Assembly: GCA_025558095.1 (NCBI GenBank)
Contig: JAIVFI010000025.1
Coordinates: 1 to 64,000 of the forward strand
DNA length: 64,000 nucleotides
Origin: Hyaloraphidium curvatum SAG 235-1
Lineage: Eukaryota > Fungi > Monoblepharomycota
Direction: 5' to 3'
A model generated the notes under the pieces. It had not been told where the DNA came from, searched no databases, and was given only the letters and a program-made list of their open reading frames with translations. The position numbers were made by a program, and so were the translations under genes. Positions 11,127 through 46,048 of this stretch are shown here, piece by piece; the stretch's first letter is position 1; every line of letters starts with the position of its first letter.

Positions 11127-11727
11127 CGAATTTCGGGGGACGGGGGCGCCGACCCTCGCCGGCCGATGCCGCCGTCGCGGTCTCCCGCGCTCGAAGGCCG
11201 ACGGGGCGGGCCGGAGAAAAACCCGGGCGGTGCGGACGATGTATGGGATTGAACTGGGGGGTTGGAGGGGGTCGGGAGGCGGAGCGGAGCGCGGGAGGCG
11301 CTGAGGCGCGAGGAATGGTTCGGGCGGTGTTGGGTGGCGCAACACCACCGCCTCCAGCATCGCGGGGCGGGGAGGCGCGGCCGCCGTTCCCGTGCGAGAC
11401 GTGCACCGCCCGCGAGTCTCCTTGGATGCGGTTTGGCCCCCCGACGCGGGTCGGGGAGGTGCGTCAGGCGGCCAAGATCCCATCTGCCGGCCGATCGGCC
11501 GTCCGGCGGGCCTGGACCCGCCCCGCACATACGTCCCTCCGCCCCGCGTGCGCCCGATCCGGCCGGCCCGCCCTCCCGGGCGTTCGTCCAACCCTCCGAA
11601 TCCGTCCTGCGCACGGTCGGTGCCCGGCGTGCTGCGGGGCGCGAGAGCGGGCGGCGCGTCGGCACTGCGGCGACCCTGGAGGCGGGCCCCTGCTCCCGGC
11701 TGGTCCTCGGCCTTCAACACCCAAGCG

Positions 11728-16670: not shown

Positions 16671-16789
16671 GTTAGGTTAGGTTAGGTTAGGGTTTAGGTT
16701 AGGTTAGGTTAGGTTAGGTTAGGTTAGGTTAGGTTAGGTTAGGTTAGGTTAGGTTAGGTAGGTTAGGTTAGGTTAGGTTAGGTTAGGTT
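16663..16789 (+). repeat. Telomeric repeat array (TTAGG)n
   Basis: About 25 tandem TTAGG units, G-rich strand pointing away from the genes, as expected at a chromosome end. Confidence 0.9.
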
Positions 16790-17062
16790 CGTTCGGAGTC
16801 GGTTCGGTTCGGTTCTGTATTCGGTCGGTTCCAGGGTTCGGTCTCTCTCGCCCCCACCCCGGCGGCGGCGGCCCCGTCGCGCGCTCCCTCTCTCCCTCCC
16901 CTCACCCTCACCTACCCCTCCCCCCCTCCCTCCCCCTCCCTCCCCTCCCCTAACTACCCTAACCCTCCCCTCCCTCCCTCACCTCACCTAACCTACCCTA
17001 CCCTACCTCCACCTCCACCTCACCTCACCTACCCTACCCTCCTCCCCACGCCATCGCCCACA
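16790..17062. other. Palindrome junction: degraded GGTTC units then degraded (CCTAA)n-like C-rich tract
   Basis: ggttcggttc..., then cctaac/cctacc/cctcac variants; an imperfect reverse complement of 16644-16660 at about 17046-17062. Confidence 0.8.
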
Positions 17063-19083: not shown

Positions 19084-19786
19084 CGCGGGGCCCGGGGCCC
19101 ACAGGCGGTCGGCGGTGCGGCGCACGCGCTGGCCAGCCGCCGGCCGGTCCTCTCAAGGCAAATGCGCCCGCAGCCGGCGAATCCACGGATGCAGCAAGGG
19201 CGCGTGGGGCACGAAAGCTATCTCATTTGGCATGCCCGGACGGAGCGGATTTGGTTAGGAGGCCCCCGTTGCATGCCGGGTCGGCGCATCGGGGCCCGTT
19301 GCCGGCCTGGGCCACCCTACCTTCCGATGCTCCGGTCCGACCCGCCGCGACAATCGCACGCGGCAAGCAACGCGGGAGGGATGACTGCTTCCCGGCTCGT
19401 CCCCGTGCACGGGAGCCTTGGATCCCCGGTCCCGTGCGCCCGGGCGGTCCCCTTTGTCCGCCCGCCTCGCCGACAGCCCGCACCCGCCACCCGGCTCAGG
19501 CAACTGCATCCCCGAGGCGGGCTGGTCTCTCAACTGCCCGTCCCAAGCCGCCGAAACGCGGGCTTCCTAGCGGATCGCACTCCGGCAGGCGGATGGTCGC
19601 CGGAAGGGGAAGGAATGAACGCGTCGGCACCACCGCACAGCCCCAACGCAACCCCATCGGACACCCGCCGGACCTCGACCCGCCACCGCATCACGCATCC
19701 GCATCAATTCACACGGACGCCGCTATGTACATCCGCCTCTCCACCGAGGCGCGCGCGGCGGGGAATCCCCGCCCCACCCCCCCGGC

Positions 19787-21978
19787 TCACCACCCCCCCC
19801 TCCCGCACGCATCCGCCGCCTCCCCCAACCCCACCTGCGCGCCCGGCGCCTCGGTCCCCGCCCACCCCTGCAGCCTCCTGAGCGCCTGCCCCGCCTCCGC
19901 GTGGGCGTGCGCGCACCGTGATGCTTCGAGGGCGGCGAGCGCGGCGCGCGAAAAGTGCGGGGCCCAGCGGGCGGTCCATCCGTCCGGGGGGTGCGAGGGG
20001 GGTTCGAGGAGGCGCAGGAGGGAGAGGGCGCACAGCGAGGTGGGGAGCGGGTCGGGGGCGTCGGGGGGGAGCAGGGCAGACAGCAAGGCCTGCGACCTCA
20101 GCAGCGATGCGCGCTGGGCGAGCAGGCGAGGGAGCCGCTCCTGAGGGATGCGCGGGGGGATGGAGGAGGACGAGCCCGAGGGGGGGAGGGAGAGGATGGC
20201 GAGGTCCGCGAGGGAGAGCCCGGGGGGAAGGGAGCCGCGGAAGGCGCGGACGCGGGAGAGGAGGTCCGCGGCCAGGAAGGGGAGGGCATCGGATTGCAGT
20301 GCGGGGAGGGGGTCGGGGCCGCCGTTGGCGAGCAGGTCCGAGAGGTCCCCCGCCGTCGGCACCACGGGTCTCGCCCATCCGACGGGGAGGGCGACGGGGC
20401 TGCGGGAGCCACAGAGCTGCAGCGCGGCCTCGCAGTGCGCGTCGTCGCACGGCAGCGGCAGCGCGCGGATGGCTTCAAGCGTGAGGCTCGGGGGTGTCGA
20501 GGAGAAGCCGCCGGCGAGCACGTCCGCGGCGGCGAGGTGCCACGCCACGCGGAGCCACTCGCGCTCCTCGAGGAAGGAAGACGGGTCCGTCGGCGGCACC
20601 GGGGAAGCCAAGGCCGGGAGGATGCCCAGCTCGCGCACGGCGGCGAGCAGCGCGCCCGTCCACGGCGACCTGCCACCCCTCCTGTCCTGAGGCATCATCC
20701 TCGCCGCCACCGCGATCGACGCGAGCCGCGAAAGCATTCCCGGGACCATCGCCTGCCTCCCCCTGGCCGGCGAGTCCAGCAGCCCCCTGAGGGCCCGGGC
20801 CACCATCGGCCGCGCCATCTCCCTCAGTCCGTCCGCCACGGCCCGGGCATCCAGCGTCCGCGAGATGCACGCGCCCTCGGGCAGCTCGGCCCTGCCCTCC
20901 GCAAGGGCTTCGGCCCCCGCCCACGCGAGGACGAGCAGCAGCAGGGTGTCCGAGTAGGCGAGCAGCAGGTTTGGCGGCACCGGCGCTGCCTGCCCCCCGG
21001 CCCCCGAGCAGCGCTGGAATGCCGCGCGGGAAATGACGGGCGGCAGGGGGAGGAAGAACGCGAATGCGTGCAGGAGCGGGACCGCTCCCGGCTCGAGGTC
21101 CAGGTCCTCGGGCGGGTCCTGCGGCGGCGGCGGGAAGGCGGAAAAGGGCAGGGGATTCGGGGAGAGCGACAAGGGTGCGAGGGCCGAGTAGGCGGATGCG
21201 GCGGGGGAGCCCAGGCTGGCCGAGAGCACGGGGACCAGGGCGCCGGCGTCCGAGACGACGACGGCGTCCATTGTCAGCCCGTGGTGGGTGTGCGGGGGCC
21301 GGTGAGGGGGCAGGGAGCGGTACGATGCGACCGAGGGCCCCGACGAGTCGCCGGATGCGACGGATGCGGCGGCGGAGAAGGAGCCCGGGTGCCTGGACGA
21401 CGAGCCGTGCGACGTGCGGCGCGGGCCGTGCTCGAACAGCTCGGGGAACACCGCCTGGGGCGAGAAGGAAAAGAGCGCCGGCTCCGTCGAGAAGGCGGCG
21501 TTGCGCGGCTCCTCGGGCGTCGGCGGCAGCGCGCCCGGCGTGTGGGAGGCAGCGAGGCCGGGCGGGCCCTGCGCAGCGAGCAGCGCGGCGTAGGCAGCCG
21601 CCTTGCCCGCGATGATCGAGGTCGAGAGCGGCTCGAAGAAGGGCTGCGTGGCGGGGCCGGCGGGCGGCGGCGGCTCCAGAATCCCCAGCGTGGCGGAGGG
21701 CGGCGGCGAGAGCGGCAGGAAGGCGTGCGGCGAGCCGCCCCGCGGCGCCGCCGGCCTGCGGACCCCCCGCATCTGGCAGCGCGCGTTGGCAGCGAGGCAA
21801 AGGGCGCAGGGGAACCCCCCGGGGCACCGGTGACTGTCGAGAAACGCGAGTCAGCGGCGGGCGGTGCGGCGGCGGACGCCTCCCACCCCCGGCGGCGGCA
21901 GCGCTCGCAGGCCTCCGTCCCCGGCGTGTGTTCGGCGGGTGTGTGGAGCGACGCGGCCGCGGACTCGGGCGGCGGCAT
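19787..21978 (-). CDS. Zn2Cys6 transcription factor (one intron inside the Zn cluster)
   Basis: Mirror of 11728-13919; C-x2-C-x6-C-x5-C-x2-C-x6-C after splicing. Confidence 0.85.
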
Positions 21979-23152
21979 CGCTTGGGTGTTGAAGGCCGAG
22001 GACCAGCCGGGAGCAGGGGCCCGCCTCCAGGGTCGCCGCAGTGCCGACGCGCCGCCCGCTCTCGCGCCCCGCAGCACGCCGGGCACCGACCGTGCGCAGG
22101 ACGGATTCGGAGGGTTGGACGAACGCCCGGGAGGGCGGGCCGGCCGGATCGGGCGCACGCGGGGCGGAGGGACGTATGTGCGGGGCGGGTCCAGGCCCGC
22201 CGGACGGCCGATCGGCCGGCAGATGGGATCTTGGCCGCCTGACGCACCTCCCCGACCCGCGTCGGGGGGCCAAACCGCATCCAAGGAGACTCGCGGGCGG
22301 TGCACGTCTCGCACGGGAACGGCGGCCGCGCCTCCCCGCCCCGCGATGCTGGAGGCGGTGGTGTTGCGCCACCCAACACCGCCCGAACCATTCCTCGCGC
22401 CTCAGCGCCTCCCGCGCTCCGCTCCGCCTCCCGACCCCCTCCAACCCCCCAGTTCAATCCCATACATCGTCCGCACCGCCCGGGTTTTTCTCCGGCCCGC
22501 CCCGTCGGCCTTCGAGCGCGGGAGACCGCGACGGCGGCATCGGCCGGCGAGGGTCGGCGCCCCCGTCCCCCGAAATTCGCCCCCCCCCCCCCCCCCCCCC
22601 GCCTCGCTCGCACGGGGATGCGCACGAACAAGGTGCATTGCTGCGTGGAAATTCCGGACGACCTCGGCGGATGCATCGGCCCTCTTCCGTGCCTCCCCCG
22701 TCCGCCGGCGCCCGAGCTCACCTTGGGGACCCGAATCGGCACCGACGACCCGATCTTGCGGGACGCGCGGATTCCCCGGCCATCCGTCCGCGGCACCGTC
22801 GCCAGCTAGCCAATGCGCTCATCCCACTTCCTCGTGCGGGAGGCAGGCCCGGCGCGGGCCGCCAAGGCGGCGGAAGGACGTCGGGGCGGCGGGGGCGGAA
22901 GGGCCGGGGCCGTGTCGGCGCGGCCGACAGGGGGAACCCCTCCCGAGAGCCCAGCGGGTTCGCGGGACCGCGCGAGGGAGTGAGTTCTCTGGCACGGGCG
23001 GGAACGCGGTGCGTGCGGCGGAAGGCGCGGACGCTGCGCGGGGTGCAACGGGGGACGGGCGGTGAGGTTGAGTCACACATTCCTCTCGCGCACAAACCCT
23101 CGTCACCGAACCGACCACCCCGTAACAACCCCCCCTCCGTTGCCGGTTCCGA

Positions 23153-24409
23153 TCACGGAAACCCCCCCTCCGCAACGCGCAGCACCCCCTCCCCCGGATC
23201 CCACACCACGCGGATGCCCGACTGCGCGAGCGTGGTCCGGAACGGCCCGCCCTTGGGCACCGCTTGCGCAGCCCACCACGGCGCCTCGGCGAGGTCCGTC
23301 GGAGGTTCCCAGGGCAGCGATGCCGGCGTCGGCGGGGCGTCGGCGCCATCCGGGGAGGTGGCGCGGGCGGGGCCCAGCCACGGGTGCCCCAGCGCCTCGG
23401 CCGCCGACGGCCTGCCCTCCGGGTGCCGCGAGAGCAGCCTCGCCAGCAGGTCGCGGGCGCCCTCGGGCATTTCCCCCGCCGCTGGCATGTCCACGTCCGC
23501 CGCGACCACCCTCGCAAACAGCTCCGCCATGCTCGCCGAATCCTCGAACGGCGTCCTCCCCCTCAACATCTCGCAGAGCACCACCCCCGCGGCCCACAAA
23601 TCCGTTTTGCAATCGTACGGCCCGCCCGCCGCCGCCTCTGGGCTGAGGTAGTACGGCGTGCCCACCGCCGGGAAGGCCTGCCTGTGCCCCCGCGGCACAA
23701 GGGCCGGCAGGGAAGGGTGCGGCGAGCAGAACACGCTGGCGAGGTCCGCGAGGCAGAGCGTCCCCGGGCGGCCGTGCTCTCTGAACAGCAGGTTGGCCGG
23801 CTTCACGTCCCGGTGGATGATCCCGTGGGCGTGGAGGTGCGCCAGCGCCGAGAGCAGCGGCCGCATCGCCTCCGCCGCCTCCCCCTCGTCCAACCGGCCG
23901 CCCCTCCGGGCGAGAAACGAGTCCAGCGAGTCTGGGAGCACCTCCATGACCGCATAAAAGGCGTCCGCGGACTCGAAACCCTCGACGAACCGGGGCATGC
24001 TCGGGTGGGAGGCGGCAACGGGCGCGATGCGGTCCCACCGCGCCCTGGCGGCCCTCAGAATGTCCGGCAGCTCCGGCCCCATGGGTTTCATGACCTTCTT
24101 GAGGGCAAATATGCCGTTGGTGGCGACGCAGCGCACGGCGCGGACGTGGGCCTCGACGCCCACGCCCAGCTCCCTCCCGACGTCCTTGTAGGCTCTACGC
24201 CGCGCCCGGCCGTGCTTGAAAATGGCTTCCTCGTCGTCCGGCCCCGCACCGGTCGGGCCGCGGGGCGCCGCGCCCTCCGATGCCGACGACGCCACCGACC
24301 CGGCCGCCACGCTGCGCCCCGACGGCGCCCGGTCCACAGACCCGCCTGGTCCCCCCGGCGGCGCGGCGTCCGGGGCGGGGCCACCGCCGGGCCGGGGGAC
24401 GGCGCTCAT
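23153..24409 (-). CDS. Ser/Thr protein kinase, CAMK-like, intronless, DFG replaced by DLA
   Basis: Kinase subdomain motifs present; start set at ATG of MSAVPRPG. Confidence 0.9.
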   Translation of the reverse strand: MSAVPRPGGGPAPDAAPPGGPGGSVDRAPSGRSVAAGSVASSASEGAAPRGPTGAGPDDEEAIFKHGRARRRAYKDVGRELGVGVEAHVRAVRCVATNGIFALKKVMKPMGPELPDILRAARARWDRIAPVAASHPSMPRFVEGFESADAFYAVMEVLPDSLDSFLARRGGRLDEGEAAEAMRPLLSALAHLHAHGIIHRDVKPANLLFREHGRPGTLCLADLASVFCSPHPSLPALVPRGHRQAFPAVGTPYYLSPEAAAGGPYDCKTDLWAAGVVLCEMLRGRTPFEDSASMAELFARVVAADVDMPAAGEMPEGARDLLARLLSRHPEGRPSAAEALGHPWLGPARATSPDGADAPPTPASLPWEPPTDLAEAPWWAAQAVPKGGPFRTTLAQSGIRVVWDPGEGVLRVAEGGFP

Positions 24410-25525
24410 CGCAGCGGACGGGGCAAGAGCGGGCGGTCGGGGCGGGCTGGAACGCGGGGCGGGATGACTGTCCCTGCGGTCCACGGCCGCCGACACCGCG
24501 CCAAAGTCGCCAGGGGGGATGAACGACGTTAGACCATGCTCCGGCGATTGATTGATGGGAGGGAGCGCGAAGCGAACGGCAGGCGAGGACACCGCCGAGA
24601 TTTCCAACCACCCCGCGCACCGAGTGAGGTACAAAGATATGCTCGCGCTGCTCGGTTTACCGGGTCCGGTTCGGTTTGCCCGGTCCGGAGGTGCCGCACG
24701 CCACGTTCGCCTGCGACTTTGTTGTGCGATCGGGGTGCTACGACAGTACCCGAGATCGCCTCCCCCGGCACCCACTGTGAACGGACCTGCGGCCCGTTCA
24801 GGGGAGACCGACGGACGTGGGTTTGGGACGGGCGTGGACTTTTTGTGTTGCCGCCGCCGGCGGACCCTGTACTATCTTCGCCACCGACATTAGACCGGCC
24901 TTCCCCCGTTCTCCTGTCGTCTCGCCCCGGTCCCTGACGTGGTGCTGCTCGACTAGCAGCCCCGTCCTCACCCACACGCGGCCGTGTCCAACGATCCGTC
25001 CGTGCAGGACGGCTTTGAGGCGGGATAGGGTTTTGCTGCATGATCGGCCGTCTTTCCATGCACGGTCCATCGTGGCCTGCGGCGCTGCAGGACGCAACGC
25101 CAGCGATCGACGCCGCCCCGGCTTCGCCTGGGCCCGGGCGGCCGGTTGCGACGCGCGCAGGAGCGCAGGGCGGCGGCGCGAAAACTTCCAACAGAGACCA
25201 GGATGCGCCGTGCCGCACGGGATCGCATTGATCCGCTTGGTTCGGGGTTCGGTGGATGCCGGGTCGGGCGGGGTCGTCACTGGCCGCCTCCGCTCCCGCC
25301 GAAACGAGGCCCCATCCGCCCCCGCATCGAGGCGGGAAACTTCCCGCAGCCTTCCCTTCGCTGCCTCCGCGGGTCCCCGGAGCCCCCGCGGCCCGCGGGG
25401 CAGGCACTTCCGGCCCTGCGGCGGCCTGCGGTCCGAGGCCTGGACCGCGCATCCTCCGCCTTCCGCCCCCCGTCTGCGCAACCCCTCCGCGACCGCCGGG
25501 CGGAATCCGCGCCGCGCCACGGGCA

Positions 25526-25927
25526 ATGGGCAGCGGCGGCCGCCCCGGCCCTGCCGCCGCCGCGCCGCCGCCGAACCCGGCACCGCCTGCCGCGTTCGCC
25601 GCGCCCGACTTTCCCGCCCTCGCGAACCGCAGCCTCCCCGCCGCCGTGCGGAACGGGGTCGATGTGCGGCGCACGCTGTTCGCCGCGGCCATCCCGCCCG
25701 CGATGCTCGCGTGGCTGGGGGAGCTGTCGCCGTGCGGGCACCGCCGTGCGAGGGCGGGGGACAATGCGCTGTGCGTCGAGTGCCACGTGGAGTACTGCAG
25801 GCCGCTTCCAGTGCCGGTTTTCGACGACGACGAGGATGCGGCGGAGGATTCGGAGGACGAGACGGAGGCGGGCCCGCCGTGCGGCCCGCCGTGCCCGCGC
25901 AGGGCGAGCTCCTCCGCCCGCCTGTGA
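25526..25927 (+). CDS. Small C-x-H..C-x-x-C-H protein with acidic tail
   Basis: ATG start; motif resembles those in 41135-41938 and 53048-53797. Confidence 0.5.
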   Translation: MGSGGRPGPAAAAPPPNPAPPAAFAAPDFPALANRSLPAAVRNGVDVRRTLFAAAIPPAMLAWLGELSPCGHRRARAGDNALCVECHVEYCRPLPVPVFDDDEDAAEDSEDETEAGPPCGPPCPRRASSSARL

Positions 25928-27381
25928 ACGCGGAACTGCGCGTTGGCGTTGCTGGCAGACCAACCCCGCAGGGCGTCGGAGGGGATGTTCGCCGGCCGGG
26001 GGATGCGGTGCGAGGGGTGCGGCAGGGATCGGGGGGGGAGGGACGGGGGATGCCTCGCGGGGAGGCTCTGATGGGCACGGTCGGGGGGGACTCGGACGGG
26101 GCCGTGCATCGGGAGGATTATGGATGATGCGTTGCAGAGAGCATTATGGACGATGCGCTGCGGCGGAGCGCTTTTCGGATTGGAGTCGGGGTTTGCGGTT
26201 GTGAAGGGTTCCCGGTCTCCTGCGGCAAGTGTCTTTCCTTCTCGGCCGACACGGTTTTAGACGTTGTAGGCGGCGCTCCGAAGAGCCGATGTACGTATCC
26301 CTTCGTTTGCGCGTGTTCCGAGGTGCCCGATCCAATGTCGCCGGCGATCCGTTCCGAGCAAGCAGGCGAACGGGACGGTGCCGCCGGCTCGGTCGCGTGG
26401 GACCGCCTCGACCCTCGGACCCGGGCGCGCGGCGTTGACTTGAAAGCCCGCGGTACCGGGGCCGCGAGAAATCGGATCGATCGACGGTTCCATGTGGCGA
26501 AGCGGTCCGGTCGTTGGCCGTCGGGCCTGGGCACGCCGTGGGGCGCCCGAACCACCCGCGCCGCGCATCCGCGGGCCGCGGCACCACGCGAAACCGGCCC
26601 AACGGAATCCGGGAACGCACCAGCCGTCCCCCTTGTCCGGCGCGGGACGGGACGCGAAGCGGATCGGGGTGGGATCGGACGCGTGCTGTGCCGAATCCGC
26701 GCGTCGGCCGTCGGGGAGGCGGGCAACTCTATCGGACCCGCGACCCGCAAGGCTGGCCGCCGGCGTTTCCGCCCCCGGACGCGGCCGCGGGGCGGCGGAG
26801 CGATGCGATGGGAGGTTTCCGTGCCTTCGCCGCTCCTCGGGGGCCCCGCGATGCGGATGCAGCTCTACCCGGTGGCGGGACCCGGGATGCGCGAAACCAC
26901 CGCAACCCCATCCTGCGATCCCGGCAAGTAGAATCGCGCACGGGCCACTGCAACCCCTGCCCGCGATCCGATTCCGCGACTGCCGGGGCGGCGGGACGCG
27001 GGCCTCGGCCCCCGGCGCCGCGGCGGAGACCGTCGGCGGGCGGTCCCTTCCTGGATGCCCAGGCCCGGCGCGCTTTAACCGCCCGCGGCCGGAGCGGCGA
27101 GCCGGTGCACCGGGCCGACGGTTCGTGCTGGGGCATAGAGGACCGAGGCGGGGTAGCGCCGGCGAGCAGGCCTCCGTGGGCCAGGGTTGCCTCGACATTT
27201 TGGATTGTTGGCGCAAAGGCCGAGTCCCGAGTCGCCGGGTGGCGGAAGCACCGCTCTTCTCTCACTTCGGTTGCCCGCCGGGCCGCCCCCGTCCGCCAGC
27301 CGGAGGCGACGCCGGGGAGAAGGGTGCCGGACGGAACGGGCCGAGGGCGGCGAGCGGGCGGCGGTTTAGGCTCGCCCGACC

Positions 27382-29960
27382 ATGGCGGCGCCCGAGGATC
27401 CGCGGCTGCCGAGCTGCTCGACCTGTTTCAGCCTGAAGGTGATTTTATCGGGTTGCGATGTCCTCGAGAAGCCTTGCTGACCGCGATTCCCCGCAGCGCC
27501 GGTGCGACTACCCCACGGGCGCGCCGCCGTGCTCGCGGTGTGCCCGGCTGGCCCGCACCGACTGCCGGCCGCCCGACCCGACCGTTTCGCGGCGGCGGCT
27601 GGAGCGGCTGAAGCGCGCGAGCAAGGGCCACGCGGTTTCGGGCGGCCACAGGAAGGCCGGCGGCGGGGGGGCGAGGCGGACCACGAACAACGGCACGGCA
27701 CACGCACCCGCCGGGGCCGGGAATAACGAGCGGACATCTTCACGGACCTCTGGAGGGACCGATTCCGCGGACGGCGGCGATGCGGCCCCCGCAGGCTCGT
27801 CCAGGGCGCTGTCAGGCCGCAGGGCAGCCGCCCTCGCCGCCGCCGGCAAGCTCGCGGAGCAGGACTCGCCTTCGTCGGGCTCCGACAGCAGGAGCTCGGG
27901 ACAGGACGAGGACGGCGAGTACGAGGAGGTTGGCATCGACGGCTCGGGCACCCTGGTCCCGGGATCGGTCGCGGCCTCGGGATCGGTGTTCGCCTCGGGA
28001 TCGGGCCTGGCCTCGGGCTCCGTGGCGGCATCGGTCGTGAGCTCGGGCTCGCTGCACAGCTACGGTGCGCCCGGCGGCGATTTCGGCCCCCTGTCCAGGG
28101 GGCAGCAGGCCGCCTTCTGCGGCCTCGCCTCGCCGACGGAACCGCTGTCGACCCTCCCGGCGCCGTGGCCGCGGCCCAGGCCGCCGCAGCTCCCCGCCGT
28201 GCCGCGGGCCCCGTCTTCCACCACGACGCTCCGCCCCGTGAGCTCGCTCTCCCTCGACCCGCAACCGCTCCCCGACGTCCTGCTGCCCTCCATCGCCGCC
28301 TACTGGGCGCACTCGCACCCGCTCTCGCCCGCCGTGCACCGCACCACCTTCGAGCGCGCATTCGCTCCTTCGACCCGCGGCTCCCCCCTCTTCGGGCCGC
28401 ACCAGCCCAACGCGCTGCTCTTCGCCATGGCGGCCCTGGGCACCCGCTTCGCCGACGTGCCCGGGCTCTCGGACGCCGACCGGATCCGCGCAGGGAGGGC
28501 CTACTGCGACGCCGCGCGGGACATGCTGCTCAACGGGTACTACGGCCGGCCCGAGGGCTCCCGCGCCATGACGGACATGGAGGCCGTGCTGGTGCTCCTG
28601 TTCCTGTACAACTTCTGGATCCCGTCGGGGCTCGTGGCGAGGATGTTCCCGCTGCTGGAGCGGACCGTGGACCTCGTCGTCGCGCTGTGCGCCGACCCGG
28701 CGCGGGGCAACCGCGACGCGCTGACGGCCGAGCCCCGCACGGCGGACGAGTGGGTCGTGCGCGAGACCAAGGCCCGCGCGTGGATCGGGTGCCTGTGCCT
28801 GGACATCCTCACGGGGTACACGAGCGGGCGGGAGCCCTACTTCCCCTACTTTTCGAGGCCGATGGTGCTCCCCGCGCACGACGGCTTCTTCGACATGGCG
28901 AGCCCGGAGGAGGCGTTCAACGTTCTGTACAGGACGCCGGGGACGGCGCCGCCGGCCGTCGCCGACTTTTCCCCGCTCTTCGCCTCGGACGTCGGCGACG
29001 CGGAGCGCGTGCGTGCCGTCCGCGAGGCCGTCGGCTCCTCCTTCTCGCATCGGGCCTACAGCGGCACGCTCCTCGTCTTCGGCACCTTCCTCCGCCACCT
29101 AAAGCACCGCCTCCGCGCGCACGCCCTCGCGCACCGCGTGTCGCCGCTCGCCCTGATGACCCAGGACCCCGCGCTCGACCGCCCCGCCGAGACGGCGTAC
29201 CGCCTCCTGAACGCGCACGTGGACGCCCTCGTCGCCGCCGTCCCGCTCGCCTTCCCCCCCGCCCTCCGCCCGCTCTTCGAATCCGGCGACGCGTCGGCCT
29301 TCTTCGCCTCCTGGCCCGCCTACTTTCCTTCCCGCGGCCACGCCCACTCCTTCTTCATGACCGCGACCATGCTCCACTCGCTCCGCATGGAATCCCTCTT
29401 CGAGGGCGACGCCTCGCGCGCCTCGCCCGACATGTTCTCCTCCCCCGCCTTCCTCTCGGTGCTCGAAGGCGCCGCCGTCGCCGTGCGCATGCTGCGCTCG
29501 CAGATGGCCGACGATCCCCGGCTGCGGTGGGGCCACCTCAGCCAGGTGGCCACGGCGCTGAGGGCGGGGAACATACTGCTGGCCGCGGTGAGGGTCGGGG
29601 CGGCGGGGATGGGGTACGAGGAGGAGGTGGGGGTCGTGGCGCGGTTCCTGGACGTGGTGGGGTGGACCTACCGGCCGCTCGGTACGTCCCGTGCGGCCCC
29701 ATGGGATCGGCCCGGGCTGACGCTCCCCTGCAGCATTGAAGGCAGCCAAGGACTTCCACGCCGCCGTCGCGGCCGCCGGCATCTCCGCCCCCCCGGCCCC
29801 GGCGGGCGACGAACCGCTGCCCGATCCCGAGCCGGTGCCCATGGCGGACGACCTGGTGCCCGCGGAGGCGCGCGAGCCGGGGCCGGGGGCGGAGATGCCG
29901 GTGGCGTTTGCGCGGGCGGCGATGGCGGGGGACAGGGCGTTCCAGGGGTACATTCGGTAG
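27382..29960 (+). CDS. Zn2Cys6 transcription factor with fungal-specific TF domain
   Basis: Exon 1 MAAPEDPRLPSCSTCFSLK, intron 27439-27496, then RRCDYPTGAPPCSRCARLARTDC; PAVHRTTF and RETKARAW..D MHR motifs; intron 29682-29733; stop at 29960. Confidence 0.9.
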
Positions 29961-30268
29961 TATGAGGGTGGGAAGGAAATAGTGGGCGTGGAGAGGAGCG
30001 GCGTGGTCGTGCGGTGCGGTGTGCTGCTGGCGCGTGGCGAGGCTGAAAAATATGCCGGGTCCGACAGTTGCTTGTAACGGGCTTTGTGCTTTGTGGATCG
30101 ATCAGTTTTGCGATGCGGTTTTGGGTCGTCCTCCCTTCCAGGGCCACGTCACCAAATCGGACTCCATTGCAGGGCCCCCGACTACGACTCGGACAAACCC
30201 CGTCCTCCTGCCCGTACCGCTCTGCCCCGGTTGCAGTTTCATCTGCAGCTGCAAGCCGGGACGATCCG

Positions 30269-30502
30269 ATGGACGACACTTCGGACCTGCGCCGGCGCGC
30301 CGTCTCCCTCTCTGCGCAACCCGCCCGAGGCACCACCACGTACCTCCTCCTGCTCTCGCTTGTCGGTCTCGTCCTCGCGCTCTTCCTCCCGTTCGACCCC
30401 GGCTTCCCGAAGCCGACGCGGACGACGGTGGTCGCGGTGGTTACCGTAACGGTGTCCGAACCGGACGCTGCGGGGGGCGGCGGGACATGCGGGAGGCGCT
30501 AG
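30269..30502 (+). CDS. Small single-TM protein or remnant of a type II membrane gene
   Basis: 77-aa ORF with one hydrophobic helix; no recognised family. Confidence 0.35.
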   Translation: MDDTSDLRRRAVSLSAQPARGTTTYLLLLSLVGLVLALFLPFDPGFPKPTRTTVVAVVTVTVSEPDAAGGGGTCGRR

Positions 30503-30630
30503 CGGGCCCTTTCCGGTGCAGACAATGATGTTAGGGCGCCCTCAATCCATGTCTCGTACCATGTTTCAGATGTGACTGCTGGGGTAGCGGGAGGGTCGGA
30601 GGGACGCGGGTCACTTTGCCAGCAACCCGA

Positions 30631-31917
30631 ATGCGGTGCCCCGCGCCCACGCGGCGCAACCTGCTGTTTGCGCTGCAGGTCGGCGGCGCGCTGGCGTTAT
30701 TCTGGCAGCTGTTTGCCGCGCCCGCCGCGTACCGCCCGCCGGCGCACCCGCGCGTGGCGGTGTGCGGCACCGACGGCTTCCGGCTCAACATCCTCGCGCA
30801 CGCCGACCTGCTCCACAAGCACCTGCTCGAGCCGCTCGACGCCGACGTGTACGCCGTCGTGACGCACCACCGGCTGTTCCCGCCGCCGGGCGACGCGCCC
30901 GGGCCGCTCAAGGGCGTGCTGGAGGCGCTGCTGGCGAGGGACGCGGACTTTTCGAGGCAGGAGCGCGCCTTCGACGTCGAGACGCGGCAGTGGATGGAGG
31001 CGTCGCCCATTTTCGGGCTGCCGTCGTCGGGGGAGCGCTGGGGCCGGCTCATGGCCGTCGAGGTGCCGCCCATGACCACCTCAAAGGGCTACACGGACCT
31101 CATCACGGCCGGCGCGTCCAAAACGACCCTGGACCTCCTCCGCCGCTTCGGCGAGGTCGAGAACGCCATCGGCCCCGCGTTCAACGCGACGGGCGCCAGC
31201 CTGCCCTCGGTGCTGGCCCGGCGGCGCTGCCTGGACGCCATCCGCGCGGGGGAGCAGCAGCGCTCCGCCGAGCTGGGCCGCGCCTTCCGCTACGACTTTG
31301 TCGTCTGGACACGGCTGCAGCTGGTCCACGTCGGGCCGTACCCGCCCCTGTCGCTGCTCGCCTCGCGGCCCGACACGCTGTGGACGACCACCAACGACGC
31401 CTACGGCGGCCTGAACGACCGGCACGCCTTCCTCCCGCGGCACATGGCCGACTGGTTCCTCTCGCAATGGGACCACATGCTCAACGGCTCCATGGACGCC
31501 GCCATCGCGGCCGTCGATCCCGGCCGGACGCTGCTCAACGGCGAGCGGATGCTGGAGCTGTTCGTAGACGCCACCAAGCCCCTCGGGGGATGGAAGCGCG
31601 CCGAGTTCGGGCCGAGCCCGTTCTTCCTGGACTGCTGCGCAAAGGGCGAGGCGTGCTTCTTCCGGGAACGCCACGCCACGAACGCCACCGTCCACTACGG
31701 CCGGCCACCCGCCCCCCGGCGGCGCGAGGTGTGCGCAAAGTACGTCACGGACACGGGGTACCTGAACGTGACCGAGAACGGGGCGCGGGAGGTCGGGTGG
31801 ACCGAACGGAGGGTCGCGGTGCCGAACTGGAACGCCATCGTGGAGGTGGGGCCCAACAAGTGGGTCAAGCGGAGGGAGGAGAAGCACTTCAACCTGAGGC
31901 GGCCGATGGTGGAGTGA
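30631..31917 (+). CDS. Type II membrane putative glycosyltransferase-like protein
   Basis: N-terminal signal anchor; YDFVVWTRLQL...GGLNDRHAF...ER motifs resembling uncharacterised GT-like proteins; strong GC3 codon bias. Confidence 0.7.
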   Translation: MRCPAPTRRNLLFALQVGGALALFWQLFAAPAAYRPPAHPRVAVCGTDGFRLNILAHADLLHKHLLEPLDADVYAVVTHHRLFPPPGDAPGPLKGVLEALLARDADFSRQERAFDVETRQWMEASPIFGLPSSGERWGRLMAVEVPPMTTSKGYTDLITAGASKTTLDLLRRFGEVENAIGPAFNATGASLPSVLARRRCLDAIRAGEQQRSAELGRAFRYDFVVWTRLQLVHVGPYPPLSLLASRPDTLWTTTNDAYGGLNDRHAFLPRHMADWFLSQWDHMLNGSMDAAIAAVDPGRTLLNGERMLELFVDATKPLGGWKRAEFGPSPFFLDCCAKGEACFFRERHATNATVHYGRPPAPRRREVCAKYVTDTGYLNVTENGAREVGWTERRVAVPNWNAIVEVGPNKWVKRREEKHFNLRRPMVE

Positions 31918-32289
31918 GCGCGGACGATGGCATCTGCCGCCGCTGTACGGGGGCGTTCGGGCCCGTCCGTCGCTTGTCTCGCTCCGGACCGCTTTCGACG
32001 GACCGGGCAGCGGGATGCCGATCCGGCGATCTAGCTAGCGCGTGGTGACCGGGATGCGCCTGGACGGCATGCCAAACCAGGACCCCGCCGCGCCGGGACA
32101 CCCGACTGGATTTGCAATGGCAATGCTCGCGTATGGCGTATGGGAAGGTTGACGGACGGAGGTTGCGCTCATGTAGCGGCGGACAACGTAGGATAGCCCC
32201 ACCACGGCGGCAAGCTTCCGTCCGCCCGACGCGAGCTCACCCACGTCCTGCGGCCCCTCCCGCCGTCCGGCCGCGCCACCCGCCCCGCG

Positions 32290-33867
32290 ATGCCGCTCTC
32301 CCCGAAGCCCTTCACCATCGCGGTGCCCGACGCCAAGCTCGACCGGCTGAAGCAGAAGCTCGAGCTGACCGACTGGCCCGACGCGTCGATCCCCGACGAG
32401 CTTGCCGGCTGGGAGTACGGCATCCCCACGAGCGTCGTGAAGAAGCTCGCCGAGGCGTGGAAGTCGTACGACTGGCGCAGGGCCGAGCGCGAGCTCAACG
32501 CGCACCCGCACTTCAAGGCCGAGGCCAACGGGATCGACGTGCACTTCATCCACAAGCCGTCGGCCAAGAAGGATGCCGTGCCGCTGCTGCTTATCCACGG
32601 CTGGCCGGTGGGGTCCCCTCCCGGCGCCCGCCGCGGCCCCCCGGCGCGCTTGGTTGACACCGACGCGTGTCTCCCATGCCCCCCACCTCATACAGGGCTC
32701 CTTCTACGAGTTCCACGAGCTGATTCCGAAGCTGGAGGACTACCACGTGGTGGTGCCGTCTCTCCCCGGGTACGGCTTCTCGAGGTGGGCCCCCCGCGCG
32801 AGGTCGGCCTTCCGGCACGATGCTAATCCCTCCCGGACGACGGGCAGCGCCCCCAAGGTCAAGGGGTTCGGGATCAGGCAGATGGCAAAGACTCTCAACG
32901 AGCTAATGGTCGGGCTGGGGTGGGTATCGGGCTCGTGCCTGGCCCGGTGAGAGCTACTGATCCCGGTCCCCGAAAGGTACACCAAGTACGTGTCCCAGGG
33001 CGGCGACTGGGGCGCCATCATCTCGCAGTGCCTCGGGGCGTTCCACCACGAGAACTGCCGCGCGATCCACGTGGGCGCCGCTCCCGTCCCACCCCGCCGC
33101 CGTCCCCTCACTCTTTCCCTCACCTTCACCCTCCCCTCTCCCATCGCCAACGCCAGCTGAATATGGTCATCGTGCCCCCTCCCTCCCCCGAGACCATCGC
33201 CGCCGACATGCCCGGCTTCACCGACGCGGAGAAGAAGATGCTCGGCGCCATGCAGCACTTTGCGGAGGAGGAGACGGGGTACCAGCGCATCCAGCAGACC
33301 AAGCCGCAGACGCTCGGCCACGGGCTCTCGGACTCGCCCGTGGGGGTTCTGGCCTGGATCGCGGAGAAGTTCCACGGGTGGACCGATCTGAGGGGGGAGA
33401 AGGACTTCCCGCCCACCATCTCGACCGACAGGCTCCTGACCAATGTCATGATCTACTACGTCAAGTGGGCCCCGCTGCCGCTCCCGTCGCCGGCCCGCAT
33501 CTCACCCCGCCGCGCGTCCGCAGCAACGCCATCACCTCGTCCACCCGCCTCTACTACGAGACCATGAAGCACGACTTCGGGACCTTCCTCGCGGCCGCGT
33601 ACGCCCCCACCCTGCCTGTGGGAATCGCCATGTTCCCCAAGGAAATCTACGGCGCCCCCAAGAAGTGGGCGGAAAGGACGTTCCCCGGCCTGGTCAGGTA
33701 CGAGCCGTTCGAGAACGGCGGGCATTTCGCGGCCATGGAGGAGCCCGAGGTGCTGCTGGGGGAAGTACTGGCGTTCCTGGGGACCGAGGTGGGTGCTGCA
33801 TTGCTGCCGGGGCGTTGGTGCGGGGCTGACGGCGGGGGGGCAGGAGGTCAAAAAGGCGCTGGCGTGA
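32290..33867 (+). CDS. Epoxide hydrolase (EHN plus alpha/beta hydrolase), six introns
   Basis: YDWRRAE, HGWP^GSFYEF, PSLPGYGFS, QGGDWG nucleophile, LSDSPVGVLAWIAEKF, GGHFAAMEEP; stop TGA at 33865-33867 after the last intron. Confidence 0.95.
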
Positions 33868-40990: not shown

Positions 40991-41134
40991 GCGAGCAGGC
41001 GAACTAGTGTGTGATCGTGGAAAGTGTTGTGTTGCAGCAGAGTGCACGTGTGCAGGTGGGCCGCGCTGGCTCCCCGTTCAATGCGAGCGGCTATGTACAG
41101 ATGTCTCCTGCCCATCTCCCGGCGTCCGGTCCCG

Positions 41135-41938
41135 TCACCGCAATGTCTGCGGGAGATGCCAGGCGGACCCGCCCCCCAGATCGGCTCCCTCCGAGTGCAG
41201 CGGCGACCCCACATCCCCCATCCAGGCCGCCCCTCCCTCCCCCGGGAACGGGAAATCGCCTCCCGCCCAGGTCGGCTCCCACACGTCCTCCTCCCCGTCC
41301 CCGGCGTCGCTCCCCGTGAGCACGAACCCGTGCCCGCCGTCCTCGTCCCACGACTCCGGTATGCCCCACCCCCGCACGCTGGCGATCGCGGGGGCTTCGA
41401 GCCCGTCGCTCCAGTTGTCCTTCTTGCGGTCGGCGTACTCGTCGGCCGAGTAGGTCTCGTGCACCGTGTTGGACGGGGCGAAGCGCACGGATTTGCGGCT
41501 CGAGGCCGAGGGGGTGCGGTCCCGGCCGGACACCGAGGTGCGCAGGCACGAGGCCGAGGGCGCACGCTGCGATGCCAGTCGGGGTTTCGGAAGTCCGTGG
41601 CGGCTCAGGTGGCAGGCAAAGCAGTAGCCCTCCTCGTGGGGGGCGTGCGGGCACCCGAAACCGCCGTCGGAGCCGTCGCCGAGGTCCGTCGAGCCATCCC
41701 CGCAGTCCTCATGAAAGCTCAATATCGGGGCGTCCGAGGGGGACGCCCAGCCGCCCCCGTTGGGTCCCGCCGGGGGTGCCGGGGGTGCATCGGAGGCCGG
41801 CCCGGGCGCCGGCCCGTCCTCGTACCGCGCCCACCACGGCGCGTCGGCCGCGGCGCCGCCCATTTCGTTCGTCGTCAGGCCGAGCTGGACCAGCTTCTCG
41901 TCTTGTTCGTTGCGTTCGCGGAGTTCAGGTTCCGTCAT
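41135..41938 (-). CDS. Disordered protein with CPH..CFACH motif and PP1-docking motif
   Basis: CPHAPHEEGYCFACH; KSVRFAPSNTVHETYSADEYADR. Confidence 0.75.
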   Translation of the reverse strand: MTEPELRERNEQDEKLVQLGLTTNEMGGAAADAPWWARYEDGPAPGPASDAPPAPPAGPNGGGWASPSDAPILSFHEDCGDGSTDLGDGSDGGFGCPHAPHEEGYCFACHLSRHGLPKPRLASQRAPSASCLRTSVSGRDRTPSASSRKSVRFAPSNTVHETYSADEYADRKKDNWSDGLEAPAIASVRGWGIPESWDEDGGHGFVLTGSDAGDGEEDVWEPTWAGGDFPFPGEGGAAWMGDVGSPLHSEGADLGGGSAWHLPQTLR

Positions 41939-42687
41939 GAGCCGGCCGGTCGGTCGGATTCGCAGACCCTCCCAGAAGGATCCCAAGGGCGCAGCAGAAG
42001 GGTCCGGCGCGCCACAACCTCACTGGCGCCGTGCCCCGAACTCCGGCGCCCGCGGCAGGCTCGCAACGCAAAGCAAGGTGTTTGGAGTGGTCGTCCCCGC
42101 CACCATCGGGACGGGCGGCTGCCGAGCGAGCGTCCCTTGGGGCCCCGAATCCGCGGATGAGTCAACGCGTCCCAAGTGGCCGATCCGGAAGAAACCGGCA
42201 CCGCCCCGACGACGGATGCGGAGCCGCAATAGCGCGGTGGGAAGCGGGATCGATGCGGCGAAGCCGGACCGGAAAGCCGTTCGGCTGTTTGTGTGCGAGG
42301 ATTCGGTGGGAAGGACGGCAGGCCGGGTGAGCGGGCGGCTTGCGGCCGCGGCGATGGGACGTAGCGGGCCGCATCCGCCGCGCCGCCGCCGCCGGCAGCC
42401 GCTCGGCTTGGCCGGACCGGGAAAACGGAGCGTTGCGGAGCTCGCGGGGTCGAGGGCACTGCTCGGCCTCGTCGCATTGGACACGCCGGGCCTGCGGTGG
42501 ACCGGGTCTGCGAGGCGGTTCGTCCGGTTCGGCACAACGTACCGTTGCGCTGGCCCGAACATTCAGGTCGGAATGCAACTTTGGACCCGGTATCATTTCC
42601 AATGGCCGGATGTGCTTAGGATCATGTTTGAGCAGCAACACGAAGCTGTTCGATGGCCCGCTCTTCTTCCCTCCCCCAACGCTTCGC

Positions 42688-44042
42688 TCACGACCTCTCC
42701 CTCCTCAACCTCCTCGAAAGCTGGATGTCGCAAGGCCGCACCACATCCCTGCATGCGTGTATCCCCGCGAGGTTGGTGTCCTCGAAAAGCCCCACGAGGT
42801 ACGCCTCGGTCGCCTCATGCAGCGCCTCGATCGCCCCGGGCGTCCACACCAGGTCGTGCGCGAAATCCGCACCAATCTCGTGGATCAGAGCCGCAAACCT
42901 CTCCGGGACGAAGCACGGCCCCGCGCGCTGCTGCTCCCGCCTGATCTCCGCGATCGCGCGGAGATCTCCCGGCGCGAGGGCGGCGAGGGCGACCGCGCCT
43001 CGCCCAGGGGACCCCGGAGCTGCCTGAGCGCGCGGAGGGGCACGGGCCCGCGGGCGAGCGCGTCGAGTGCGCGGAAGCCGAGGCCGGCGAGCTCCGAGAG
43101 CAAGTCCGAGGCGGGGTCCTCTGCGTCGGGGCCGTTCCCGGCGGAGGCCTGCTCGTAGAGGTCGGGGGCGTCCGTCTGCAGGGACATGGCGTAGTCGGCC
43201 TGTGCGCGGTATTCCTCCATCTCGTCCTCCAGGACGTCGATGTCCTCCTCGATCTCCTCCAGCAGACGCAGACCCGGCTCGCGGTTCTCATACGGCGTTG
43301 CGGCGCCGGGCATCAGCTCGTCCAGGTGCCGCAACGCGTCCTCGACCCTGCATGCCACCGCCCAGGCATCGTCCTCCCCGTCGATCTCAGCCTCGGCGGC
43401 GATGACTGCGTCCCAGGCCGCCTCGGCGCGCTCCGCATCCGTGGAGCCAAGGGCATCCCACGCGCCGGGGTCGGTGAACATGTCCTCGAATTCCTCCTGG
43501 GCGATGGCCGCTTCTTCGTCGGCCTCCTCGGGGTCGTCGAGAACAGAGCCGTTCGAGGCGGATTCGGTCCCCCCGTCGCTCCCGCTGAGCAAGCTCTCGG
43601 AATCCGAGCCCGATTCGTCGTCCCAATCCGAATCCGGCCCGTCTTCCGCCGAATCCGCCGCCCCGTCGTCGTCCCAGTACTCCACCGGGCACGTGTCCCA
43701 CCTCACGGAATCTCCGTCCACCGTCCTGCGCCAGGCGAACCCCTCGTCCCCCTTCACGTGCCTCGCCAACCCCCACAGCGCGTCCTTCCCAGCCACCGCG
43801 GCGATGGCCCGCAGCAGCTCATCCAGCTGCTCCGGATCCTTTGCTGCGCGTGCGACTGCGTCTGCGAGGGTCGCTTCGCGCTCCGGTGATTGGGACGGCG
43901 CGGGCCGTTTCCGGGGGCGCGTCGGGGTCGGCTCCGTCCGCGGCGAGGAGGGCGGCGCGGCCTCCGACGGTGCGGCGCAGGCTTCCGCGTGGACCGCGAC
44001 AGGGACGGGGCAGGCCCCGTGCGGGCCGCGCAATTCGGCCAT
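42688..44042 (-). CDS. Acidic-domain protein apparently fused to a divergent C-terminal histone H3 fold (1-nt frameshift at about 42995)
   Basis: The minus frame ending in TGA at 42688-42690 reads EIRREQQ...FAALIHEIGADFAHDLVWTPGAIEALHEATEAYLVGLFEDTNLAGIHACRDVVRPCDIQLSRRLRRERS. It has no start codon of its own and overlaps the end of the D/E-rich ORF starting at 44042. Confidence 0.85.
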
Positions 44043-44405
44043 TGCAGGAAGGGAGAAAGGAAGTAAGGACAAAGGACTCGATCAATGGCGATTCGTTAGA
44101 GACTTCGTCGAGCAAGAACTCCAGGACACGCGTTAACTATCCAGTTCACAGAGAAAGCCATAGAAATGGAGTATCGAGACGGCCAGCTGCCGTTCAGGCG
44201 CCGAGGCGGGTGCCTTCCTATTGGAAGTGGCAAAAGTCATCCAACCGCAGTGAGCTCTGATCTCGACGTCGGCAAGGTCTTCTACTTCAGTGATCAACGT
44301 TTGCTTCGTTGCAAGCCGTCCGGACTTGCATCGATGGTGGGCTGTTGGGGGACATTACCTCGCGCGTGGGGACCGCAATCGCATGCGCCGCCGCCTAGCA
44401 CAAAG

Positions 44406-45986
44406 ATGGAGCAAAGGGACGTGGAACCCCTCCCTTTTACCGCGCGGGACTTTCTGGCTCTGTTCCCCGCGGCGCCGCAGCCGCCCGAGACGCTCCTGCC
44501 GCGCGACTGTGCGCCGGACGCGTTCGACCCCGCCGCCGAGCTGCGCGGCCAGGATCCGCTGGGCGTGGACGCCTTCCTCCGCGAGCTGAGGTCGCGGAGC
44601 AGACTGCTATCGGCGCAGACGCGGCTCGCGCTCTGGTTGGCAGCGCTTCCGGAGTGGTTCGGGGGTGCCGTCGTCCAACAGTTCTCTTGGATCGCCCTCG
44701 CGCTCGCTCTACTGGTCCCGCTGTGGGTCTTCAATGCTTCCCTTGGTCTCTTCGATACCGTACCGCTGGCCATGGGGACCGCGGCCATCGTCGTCGCCTG
44801 TTCCATGTGGATCTTGTTCATCGTTGCGCGGACCGACTTCCGGGCGTGGATCGTTGCGGGCCGGTACTCGGCCGGCGTTTCCCTGGACAATCACGTCCAC
44901 GCCACCGTGGTACGGTGGTGCCAAGCCGCCCGCGGCGCCGCGGCATCCGCCGAGGCGTGCGAGACAGCCCGGGAGCTCGCCCGGGGCTGCGGTTCCGTCC
45001 TCGGCAAGCATGAAGAGGGAGACGCGTTCTGCAGCTGTGCGCGGGTGGGCTGCGCCGGCACCCTGGCGCGGAATGCGGCGCGGCTCCAGGCCTGCTATGC
45101 TGCCTCCCAAGTCATCAACCTTTGGTACATCTTGTCGCTCGTGTGGACTCCACTTTTCTCCGCGGCATACGTCCCGCTCACGTACACGACTTGGTGGAGC
45201 GGCACGCTTGCCGCGGCGTACATCGCCGTCGCTTCATTTCGGGCGTTTTACAACTCGTCGCGCATCCTTCTTCTGACCACTGCCCATCTTGACTTGGAGC
45301 AGAGGATCCAGCACCCGTCTTGTTCGGCTGTCCTTGTCCTCGATGATCATGAGGCACCGGGAGGCACTGCTTGAAGCGACCATAACCGTGCCTCCTTCGC
45401 TACTTAATGGTTCTGAGGCTTATGTCCGACTCCATGGGGCTCTGTCGCGGAGATGGAAAGATCGTGCTCAGCGCGCCACCAGCGCAACAATGATCATTGT
45501 CTGCTCCTTCGCGGCCCTCCAGGGGCTCGTCTTCAACGTCGCGGGGGACGCTTGCGTCCCCATGTGGGTGCTGGCCATGATAGCCTTCAACCTGCGCCTG
45601 ATCTTTGTCGACGCCGTGATCCTGGCGGCGTCCAACGCCAAGCCGATTCGATCGTTGACCTTTACCGCAACGCCGTTCGGGAGATTGTGGAGCTGGTCCA
45701 CTACGCGCGGACGGCTTCCGCCCCCGCGGGCGCGGCCGACACGGAGGAGGGACGGCTGGCGCGTGTCGACGCCCTGGCGTCGCTCTCGGAGAACGCGGAG
45801 ATCCTGCGCGCCTTTGTCGCCGGGGACCAGCACCGCGCCCGATTCTTTGGCCTGGTCGCGACGATGAGCCTCGTGCGGACGCTGGCGGTCACCCTGTTCA
45901 CGGTGCTGCTGGGGCTGTGGACGATCTTCCGCGGTGCGGGGATCCGGTTCGTCGTGGACGTGGCCTGCCCGGCCGTGGGGAGCTGA
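44406..45986 (+). CDS. Seven-transmembrane protein, candidate gustatory-receptor-like (7TMIC); two homopolymer frameshifts
   Basis: ORFs 44166-45374, 45289-45867 and 45453-45986 join with single-C indels at about 45315 and 45638; seven hydrophobic segments. Confidence 0.7.
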
Positions 45987-46048
45987 GAAGGGGCGCGGCA
46001 GGCAGGGAAACGGGCAGATGCAATCATGCAGATTCCACCACGACGTCC

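Follow-up and report, generated by a model that had tools for sequence, protein, structure and literature searches.

The histones so far described from viruses are either nucleosome builders or near-copies of host histones. Lone viral H3 proteins were reported by Talbert et al. 2022 (PMC9145170) from the Dishui Lake phycodnavirus, Sylvanvirus, and mimivirus-related metagenome-assembled genomes (MAGs); their folds are 73-87% identical to host H3, with the DNA contacts and most modification sites kept, and two H3s from 'late phycodnavirus' MAGs carry extensions of ~170 residues with no known homology. The same survey covers other single viral histones with an altered N-terminus, the H4 of Cotesia bracovirus (CvBV-H4) and a pandoravirus H2B, which are proposed to enter and disturb host chromatin pathways. 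Here we describe a gene on the minus strand of a 64,000-nucleotide stretch of the fungus Hyaloraphidium curvatum SAG 235-1 (G000:C25:1-64000, hereafter the window; assembly of 31.9 Mb in 55 contigs), in which an H3 fold stripped of basic DNA contacts is joined to an acidic region that replaces the basic tail, an arrangement first recognized in an earlier note made from the sequence alone. With confidence a little above even, we explain it as one gene, a horizontally acquired member of a giant-virus family of acidic H3-like proteins, acting as a decoy-type histone.

The H3-like fold (42691..42972, minus strand) comprises 94 AA residues, running from the alpha-N helix through α1-L1-α2-L2-α3 to a terminal RRERS, and is followed by a TGA stop at 42688..42690. 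It matched the Pfam family Histone (PF00125, E 2.4e-12) and its best PDB matches were all H3 (E 3e-22, residues 43-134), which identifies it as a histone fold of H3 type with alpha-N. The earlier note had claimed a gapless match to H3 residues 50-135 with E97-L109 identical, and this was borne out: the alignment is gapless from E50, with a single 1-residue gap ahead of residue 47, the segment EAYLVGLFEDTNL in α2 is identical to canonical H3, and 46 of the 93 aligned positions agree with the H3 consensus.

What is retained in this fold is the hydrophobic core, α2, and residues H113, R116, D123, L126, R128/R129, R131, and R134. Going by the structures of the nucleosome and of Asf1-H3-H4, we take these for the residues that contact H4, build the H3-H3' four-helix bundle, and bind Asf1. 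What is lost is most of the basic surface. Residues R49, K56, R63, K64, R69, R72, R83, K115, and K122 are now non-basic without exception (9/9), and among the basic DNA-contact residues only R52/R53 and R116 are retained. All of the replacements listed in the earlier note (R49A, K56Q, R63V, K64P, R69A, R72H, K79A, R83V, K115C, T118V, and K122C) were correct in our alignment, as were the residues it gave as kept (H113, R116, D123, L126, and R129). The fold has a net charge of -3 and an isoelectric point (pI) of 5.8, compared with a net charge of +6 to +8 for canonical H3, and the basic H3 tail with K4, K9, K27, and K36 is absent, its place being taken by a region of 344 AA that is unlike an H3 tail. 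The basic contacts, net positive fold, and basic tail of a nucleosomal, DNA-wrapping H3 are therefore not found here.

The acidic N-terminal region (43011..44042, minus strand, codon starts 44150-3k) begins at an ATG at 44042. The note had put it at about 350 AA with long D/E tracts and an NLS-like PRKRP, a description that agrees well with the 344 AA, 83 D/E residues (24%), net charge of -56, and pI of 4.1 that we calculated; PRKRP, a putative nuclear localization signal (NLS), occupies residues 43-47 (43902..43916, minus strand). Residues 1-56 are Pro/Ala-rich and predicted to be disordered, and the acidic core spans residues ~121-300. The acidic and H3 pieces were treated as separate sequences throughout, and a single-sequence AlphaFold2 (AF2) model of the acidic region placed helices at 53-95 and 171-331 at low confidence (pLDDT 53). 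No Pfam family matched the region, and no homologue of it was found by word search or in the ESM Atlas.

The two parts are read in frames one base apart, as the note had proposed, the H3-like part having codon starts at 44148-3k and translating to PGDLRAIAEIRREQQRAGPCFVPERFAALIHEIGADFAHDLVWTPGAIEALHEATEAYLVGLFEDTNLAGIHACRDVVRPCDIQLSRRLRRERS. This frame is open for 199 codons without an ATG, which is consistent with the note's remark that it was missing from the list of open reading frames (ORFs), where just a 53-AA ORF starting with GTG is given. The acidic ORF, in turn, stays open from its ATG down to its own stop at 42885. The GC content at third codon positions (GC3) is 0.82-0.97 in the acidic frame down to ~43010, beyond which the coding signal of that frame fades and GC3 in the H3 frame is 0.82-0.88. 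Codon-by-codon reading placed the switch at 43010-42962, and the corresponding frame-break interval (42962..43010, minus strand) is rich in G/C homopolymers with a local GC of up to 85%. Because high GC3 moves from the acidic frame to the H3 frame, both parts look coding. Judged from the sequence, the acidic and H3-like parts are one gene and not two, since the H3 frame has no ATG, the GC3 periodicity changes frame within ~50 nt, and the relatives described below all have a single uninterrupted ORF.

With the 105-AA H3 piece as the query, exhaustive HMMER searching of 1.84 billion representative proteins returned thousands of H3s at ~52% identity and no close orthologue; one entry of the same 105 AA with a 100% match (P0001) was taken to be the query itself. 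The best single-domain matches were long proteins that end in the H3 fold, namely P0022 (465 AA), P0025/P0154 (463/456 AA), P0050 (452 AA), P0031 (with P0155; 489 AA), and P0023 (301 AA), to which P0158 (463 AA), P0159 (441 AA), and the ORFs of L011 and L040 (~460-500 AA) were added. The note had suggested looking for homologues of the same architecture, and ~10 distinct proteins of 301-500 AA were found, all uninterrupted ORFs in which an acidic N-terminus precedes an H3-like fold at the C-terminus. Their N-termini contain 23-31% D/E, with net charges of -30 to -78 in the seven computed, and their folds have net charges of -1 to -11 as against the +6 to +8 of canonical H3. Some viral members (the L011 and L040 ORFs) have KRKR immediately ahead of the alpha-N helix. 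For the viral P0158, AF2 gave an all-helical model without a confident global fold (pTM 0.35), and a search of BFVD matched the histone fold only.

The fungal gene shares with these proteins a set of derived residues, including Y54E (8/8 family members), K64P (7/8), S86P (7/8), F84W (6/8), S57R (5/8), V89I (5/8), and R49A (4/8). The fungal gene and every one of the eight family members have R63, K79, and K115 replaced; K122 is likewise replaced in the fungal gene and is kept in only one of the eight. At 14 of 15 family-invariant columns the fungal gene is identical to the family, the fifteenth being a change of V to I. The fungal gene thus carries the whole family signature, that is, a C-terminal fold with Y54E/K64P/F84W/S86P and the loss of R63/K115/K122. 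A careful maximum-likelihood (ML) tree of 45 rows and 94 columns, with long branches, placed the family and the fungal gene in one clade (ultrafast bootstrap [UFboot] 87, SH-aLRT 87) with the fungal gene nested inside it. The nearest outgroups were the H3 moieties of multi-histone fusions (wider clade 91/91), and a quick tree of 74 rows recovered the same clade with a support of 84. Membership in the family is well supported by these characters and the ML tree, if not proven statistically, and we hold with good confidence both to that membership and to a viral origin.

The genomic settings of the relatives point to giant viruses. P0159 is encoded on a 221-kb metagenomic contig together with a deoxynucleotide monophosphate kinase (DNMK), a RING protein, ADP-ribosylglycohydrolases, and two genes of the poxvirus PARP_regulatory type, the regulatory subunit of poly(A) polymerase. 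The L011 copy comes from a viral contig of 81 kb in IMG/VR, which also encodes Erv1/Alr and the catalytic subunit of the giant-virus poly(A) polymerase. The family spans GC contents of 36-68%, and no member was found when the species genomes of bacteria and archaea in GTDB (185,579) were scanned with a pattern, on which ground a bacterial origin of the relatives was rejected. Because its members sit on contigs with giant-virus genes and none was found in those bacteria and archaea, the acidic H3-like family is a giant-virus family, and the kinship with giant-virus histones that the note had called speculative has become the best-supported part of its proposal. The family is apparently an undescribed one of the Nucleocytoviricota; no account of an acidic H3 type devoid of DNA contacts was found in PMC9145170 or in bioRxiv 10.1101/2024.12.06.627149.

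Two conserved neighbours were seen around the viral copies. An HU gene (PF00216, E 2e-19) stands immediately upstream of P0159 in divergent orientation, and HU is also found upstream of P0154, on a 28-kb contig of 65% GC. In all, HU takes this place in two viral lineages, with the HU-type (Bac_DNA_binding) genes at L009:6728-7114 and L012:9541-9921 directly upstream and divergent, and HU and the acidic H3-like gene may form a functional pair. Just downstream of the acidic H3-like gene, an ORF of 760-770 AA without a Pfam family (L007:2663-4939 and L011:2429-4738) is 62% identical between two viral contigs that differ widely in composition (67.5% GC for L007, 48% for L011), which makes it a conserved giant-virus gene.

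Compared with the lone viral H3s of PMC9145170, the family is alike in consisting of a single H3 fold behind a non-canonical N-terminal extension, with host histones as presumed partners, and unlike them in being only ~50% identical to H3, in the loss of the basic contacts and tail, and in an acidic region of 200-400 residues. CvBV-H4 and the pandoravirus H2B, for their part, keep DNA-binding folds, have tails that are basic or mixed, and are proposed to become part of nucleosomes and not to block assembly, unlike what we propose for the fungal gene. In the giant-virus histone fusions, which include the H4-H3 doublets of Marseilleviridae and H2B-H2A-H4-H3 quadruplets such as P0115, the H3 parts are the nearest outgroup to our family, and the H3 of P0115 shares Y54E, GPC after alpha-N, and R72H (LVHEIG, compared with the fungal LIHEIG). 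These fusions, however, join other histone folds and build nucleosome-like particles, and the H3 fold of P0115 has a net charge of +2; the fungal H3 fold is fused instead to a non-histone acidic region that belongs to no Pfam family. P0115 and its companions P0156 and P0157 come from Logan contigs of ~2.3 kb and read as quadruple fusions (H2B-H2A-H4-H3) of 703-709 AA with acidic linkers, with Y54E, GPC, and R72H in the H3 part as in the fungal gene.

Canonical H3/H3.3 and CenH3 (CENP-A/Cse4) have the same fold, core, and H113/D123/L126/R129 as the fungal gene, which differs from them in having neither the basic tail with K4/K9/K27/K36 nor a loop-1 insertion, and in the net negative charge of its fold. 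Acidic histone chaperones and DNA mimics, among them nucleoplasmin, Nap1, and the acidic tails of Asf1, Spt16, and DAXX, use D/E tracts to shield basic histone surfaces. The likeness of our protein to these is one of functional analogy, with no sequence or fold relationship, and it would differ from them in that acidic region and histone fold belong to one covalent chain, so that, if the analogy is apt, one molecule would be both partner and shield.

From these features we propose, tentatively and somewhat short of even confidence, an H3-surrogate or decoy mechanism. Through α2/α3 and the H113/D123/L126/R129 surface, the fold would stand in for H3, either paired with H4 or on a histone chaperone, any complex so formed would be unable to hold DNA at alpha-N, at L1, and at the dyad, and the arm of net charge -56 would cover the leftover basic surface as a built-in DNA mimic. 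The outcome would be a histone sink or decoy, or else a self-chaperoned H3 surrogate. In viruses, such a protein could prevent host histones from loading onto viral DNA, a role that the adjacent HU would suit, or could disturb or starve host chromatin assembly. A conserved viral H3 without DNA contacts, with its partner surfaces kept and with an arm of -50 to -80, would, if this is true, represent a different strategy, that of competing for H4 and chaperones in place of wrapping DNA.

The fungal copy most likely reached its place by horizontal transfer from a giant virus into a subtelomeric region. The direction from virus to fungus would follow from the several diverse viral lineages in which the family occurs, as against one fungal genome, and from the nested position of the fungal gene in the tree, and capture of one viral gene would be the most economical history. 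The copy points to gene flow from giant viruses into a fungus that looks dikaryan. It is single-copy in the assembly, and its neighbours are fungal or of no assigned function, so that the viral-genome and HU context of its relatives is not found around it. HU was not found anywhere in the assembly, and neither was a match to major capsid protein (MCP), VLTF3, or poly(A) polymerase (PF04451, PF04947, PF19244), although for these last three families positive controls were also silent and the sensitivity of the search is unproven. An integrated giant virus (a giant endogenous viral element) was rejected as the source on the lack of hallmark genes in the assembly and of viral neighbours.

More widely, giant viruses of several lineages might encode an 'anti-histone' that pairs with H4 or chaperones, does not bind DNA, carries an acidic DNA mimic, and often travels with a genome-packaging HU, while the fungus, read as non-flagellated and Dikarya-like, keeps a captured copy working; taken as a whole, we consider this proposition doubtful. 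The non-flagellated, Dikarya-like fungal group is treated as not infected in a 2026 paper on Mycodnaviridae (PMC13533422), and a captured 'anti-histone' would, if true, be a trace of giant-virus contact within it. An intact fungal copy would also offer a tractable cellular setting for the effects of the protein on chromatin, and with a real frame break it would be a recent molecular fossil, yet still the lead that exposed the family.

Several results weigh against our main explanation, that of a horizontally acquired decoy-type histone. None of the neighbours is viral and no flanking ORF matches the viral loci. The direction of transfer is deduced from the distribution of the family only. Between the fungal and viral N-termini, hhalign gave E values of 0.14-0.17, and the score of an N-terminal hidden Markov model was equalled by 660 of 2000 shuffles. 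Short collinear motifs, for example ending in PDL(F/Y), are seen by eye only. The N-termini of the fungal gene (344 AA, net -56) and of the viral family (206-394 AA, net -30 to -78) are thus alike in length, charge, and helical character only. The fungal fold is 52-54% identical to canonical H3 compared with 42-48% to family members, and in the approximately unbiased (AU) test a position of the fungal gene outside the viral group cost 15.5 log-likelihood units and was not rejected (p 0.142). Binding to H4 or Asf1 and the loss of DNA binding are predicted from the residues kept and lost. The frame break, moreover, may be real, and the one run that could speak for transcription (X3, below) is RNA only by guess and had no spliced joints anywhere.

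The nature of the frame break bears on whether the fungal copy works. We compared the contigs of three public runs of the same organism from two studies (X1-X3) with positions 41000-46000. They matched the assembly wherever they could be placed, apart from 1-nt deletions in X2, but the contigs of all three runs end short of the junction, at which X1 leaves 42875-43003 uncovered, X2 42826-43011, and X3 42926-43124. Among the contigs listed, the 78 nt at 42926-43003 are the sole part of 41000-46000 that no run covers, and this hole is 78% GC, with peaks of 85% and many G/C runs. A random lesion in the 1.35-kb gene would hit it ~6% of the time. The depth of X3 was 63 at 42615-42925, 114 at 43125-43868, and 11 at the lower-GC flank 44033-44490, which would fit one transcript and is not counted as evidence of expression.

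Neither of two ways of joining the frames held up. An intron was modelled on the genome's own H3 genes (GTG/GTA donor, CTGAC or CTAAC branch [CTRAC], T-rich tract, 56-96 nt), and none of the 107 GT..AG pairs enumerated both retains AIAEIRR and resembles the introns of the genome. Programmed -1 frameshifting was rejected as well, there being no X XXY YYZ slippery heptamer within the break interval. The deletions specific to X2 (43113, 43358, and 45289, the first two within the acidic H3-like gene) were also discarded as real variants, because those at 43113 and 43358 together would run into a stop codon at 43313-43315, and are read as errors of a low-depth run. We lean towards an assembly error as the probable cause of the break, because it falls in the sole commonly uncovered stretch, where an uncorrected long-read error would fall preferentially; that unpolished sequence is present in this assembly is indicated by the start of the contig, a fold-back artefact with raw-read-like noise (see below). 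A real frameshift is the lesser prospect, though a substantial one, and we regard the fungal copy as intact with a confidence modestly above even.

Among the alternatives, the one that survives best is that of a dead relic, in which a giant-virus gene, whether it arrived alone or is all that remains of an integrated viral element, suffered a real one-base frameshift and is now a functionless pseudogene. Such a relic would account for a break that is present in the assembly with no credible intron or slippery site, for a subtelomeric, single-copy gene that has no fungal orthologue among the 1.84 billion representative proteins, and for an N-terminal similarity to the viral proteins that is past detection. 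However, a single lesion in 1.35 kb, a codon-position GC signal that is strong in both parts, and 14 of 15 family-invariant residues intact are not what would be expected of it, and the lesion sits exactly in the 78-nt uncovered stretch, a coincidence of ~6% by chance; at 70% GC long open frames are common, so that intactness alone is weak evidence either way. On these grounds we consider the relic a rather unlikely but serious contender to a working, captured gene.

Much less probable is a home-grown origin, by which a fungal H3 paralogue, for example a retrocopy, was joined to an acidic ORF and came to resemble the viral architecture by convergence. The host genome has four canonical H3 genes, each with two introns and an AIG-type α2 that resembles the one in Dikarya, and the absence of these introns from the acidic H3-like gene would suit a retrocopy, as would a fold whose identity to canonical H3 (52-54%) is above that to any family member, the shared EAYLVGLFEDTNL, a C-terminus (RRLRRERS) that resembles the host RRLRGERS, and an AU test that allows a position outside the viral group. 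Such identities are nevertheless expected, since a short-branched canonical H3 would show higher identity to either of any two long branches, and convergence would have to explain 16 derived residues that recur in two or more of the eight family members, among them the rare set Y54E+K64P+F84W+S86P, together with the clade support of 87/87 and the match of the N-terminus to the family in length and charge. One further H3 paralogue in the host, at G000:C3:246468-246883 (L006, minus strand), has a canonical tail and α1 with the intron positions kept, followed by an α2-α3 that has degenerated EDYVVQLMGETQIMAVHARRVTI and a C-terminus that is changed as well PKDINLALRLHHKNAL, so that we see in it either a copy in decay or an odd variant.

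A nucleosomal variant that wraps DNA, such as a centromeric or otherwise specialised H3 with a very long tail, is very improbable: the H3 fold is complete with alpha-N and its F84W is also seen in the host CenH3, but all nine of the contact residues R49, K56, R63, K64, R69, R72, R83, K115, and K122 are non-basic, the fold is net negative, and the host has its own CenH3. The acidic H3-like gene was accordingly rejected as the CenH3 of this fungus, having no loop-1 insertion where the separate host CenH3 has a long loop 1. The host CenH3, at G000:C2:761934-762433 (L016, minus strand), is encoded in three exons and combines a divergent basic N-terminus with its long loop 1 EYVSLQFEAGETAGMRWQG. 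Least tenable of all is the assembly taken literally, as two unrelated features, one an acidic ORF with its stop at 42885 and the other an H3 fragment that is not translated, because the coding signal leaves the acidic frame after ~43010 to appear in the H3 frame, which has no start codon, and the same two-part order forms a single ORF in every relative.

The window carries fungal genes, which encode TRI12 and MFS transporters, Zn2Cys6/Fungal_trans factors, a P5 ATPase, a GMA12/MNN10 transferase, a kinase, an epoxide hydrolase, and a beta-lactamase-family protein. Searches for radial spoke 3 and STE3, made with the identity of the host in mind, found neither, a result that is uninformative. 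Positions 979-16643 and 17063-32726 form a perfect 15.7-kb inverted repeat (100% complementary), at the centre of which (16660-17060, 419 nt) ~25 TTAGG repeats give way to degenerate sequence that resembles a raw read. This has the appearance of a chromosome end at which the assembler turned back on itself to give a fold-back chimera, in which case the first 16.8 kb of the window are probably a mirror-image artefact and the real telomere is near 16.7 kb. With the telomere placed at the centre of the repeat, the acidic H3-like gene is ~26 kb from the telomere-like repeat and hence subtelomeric. On the plus strand, a gene for a multi-pass membrane protein (44166-46000) shifts frame near 45290-45420 and back near 45650; its first frame change is intron-like (CTGAC ... 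CAG near 45273-45301) and its second leaves no room for an intron, and the 1-nt deletion at 45289 within this gene occurs in X2 only, with X1 and X3 agreeing with the assembly.

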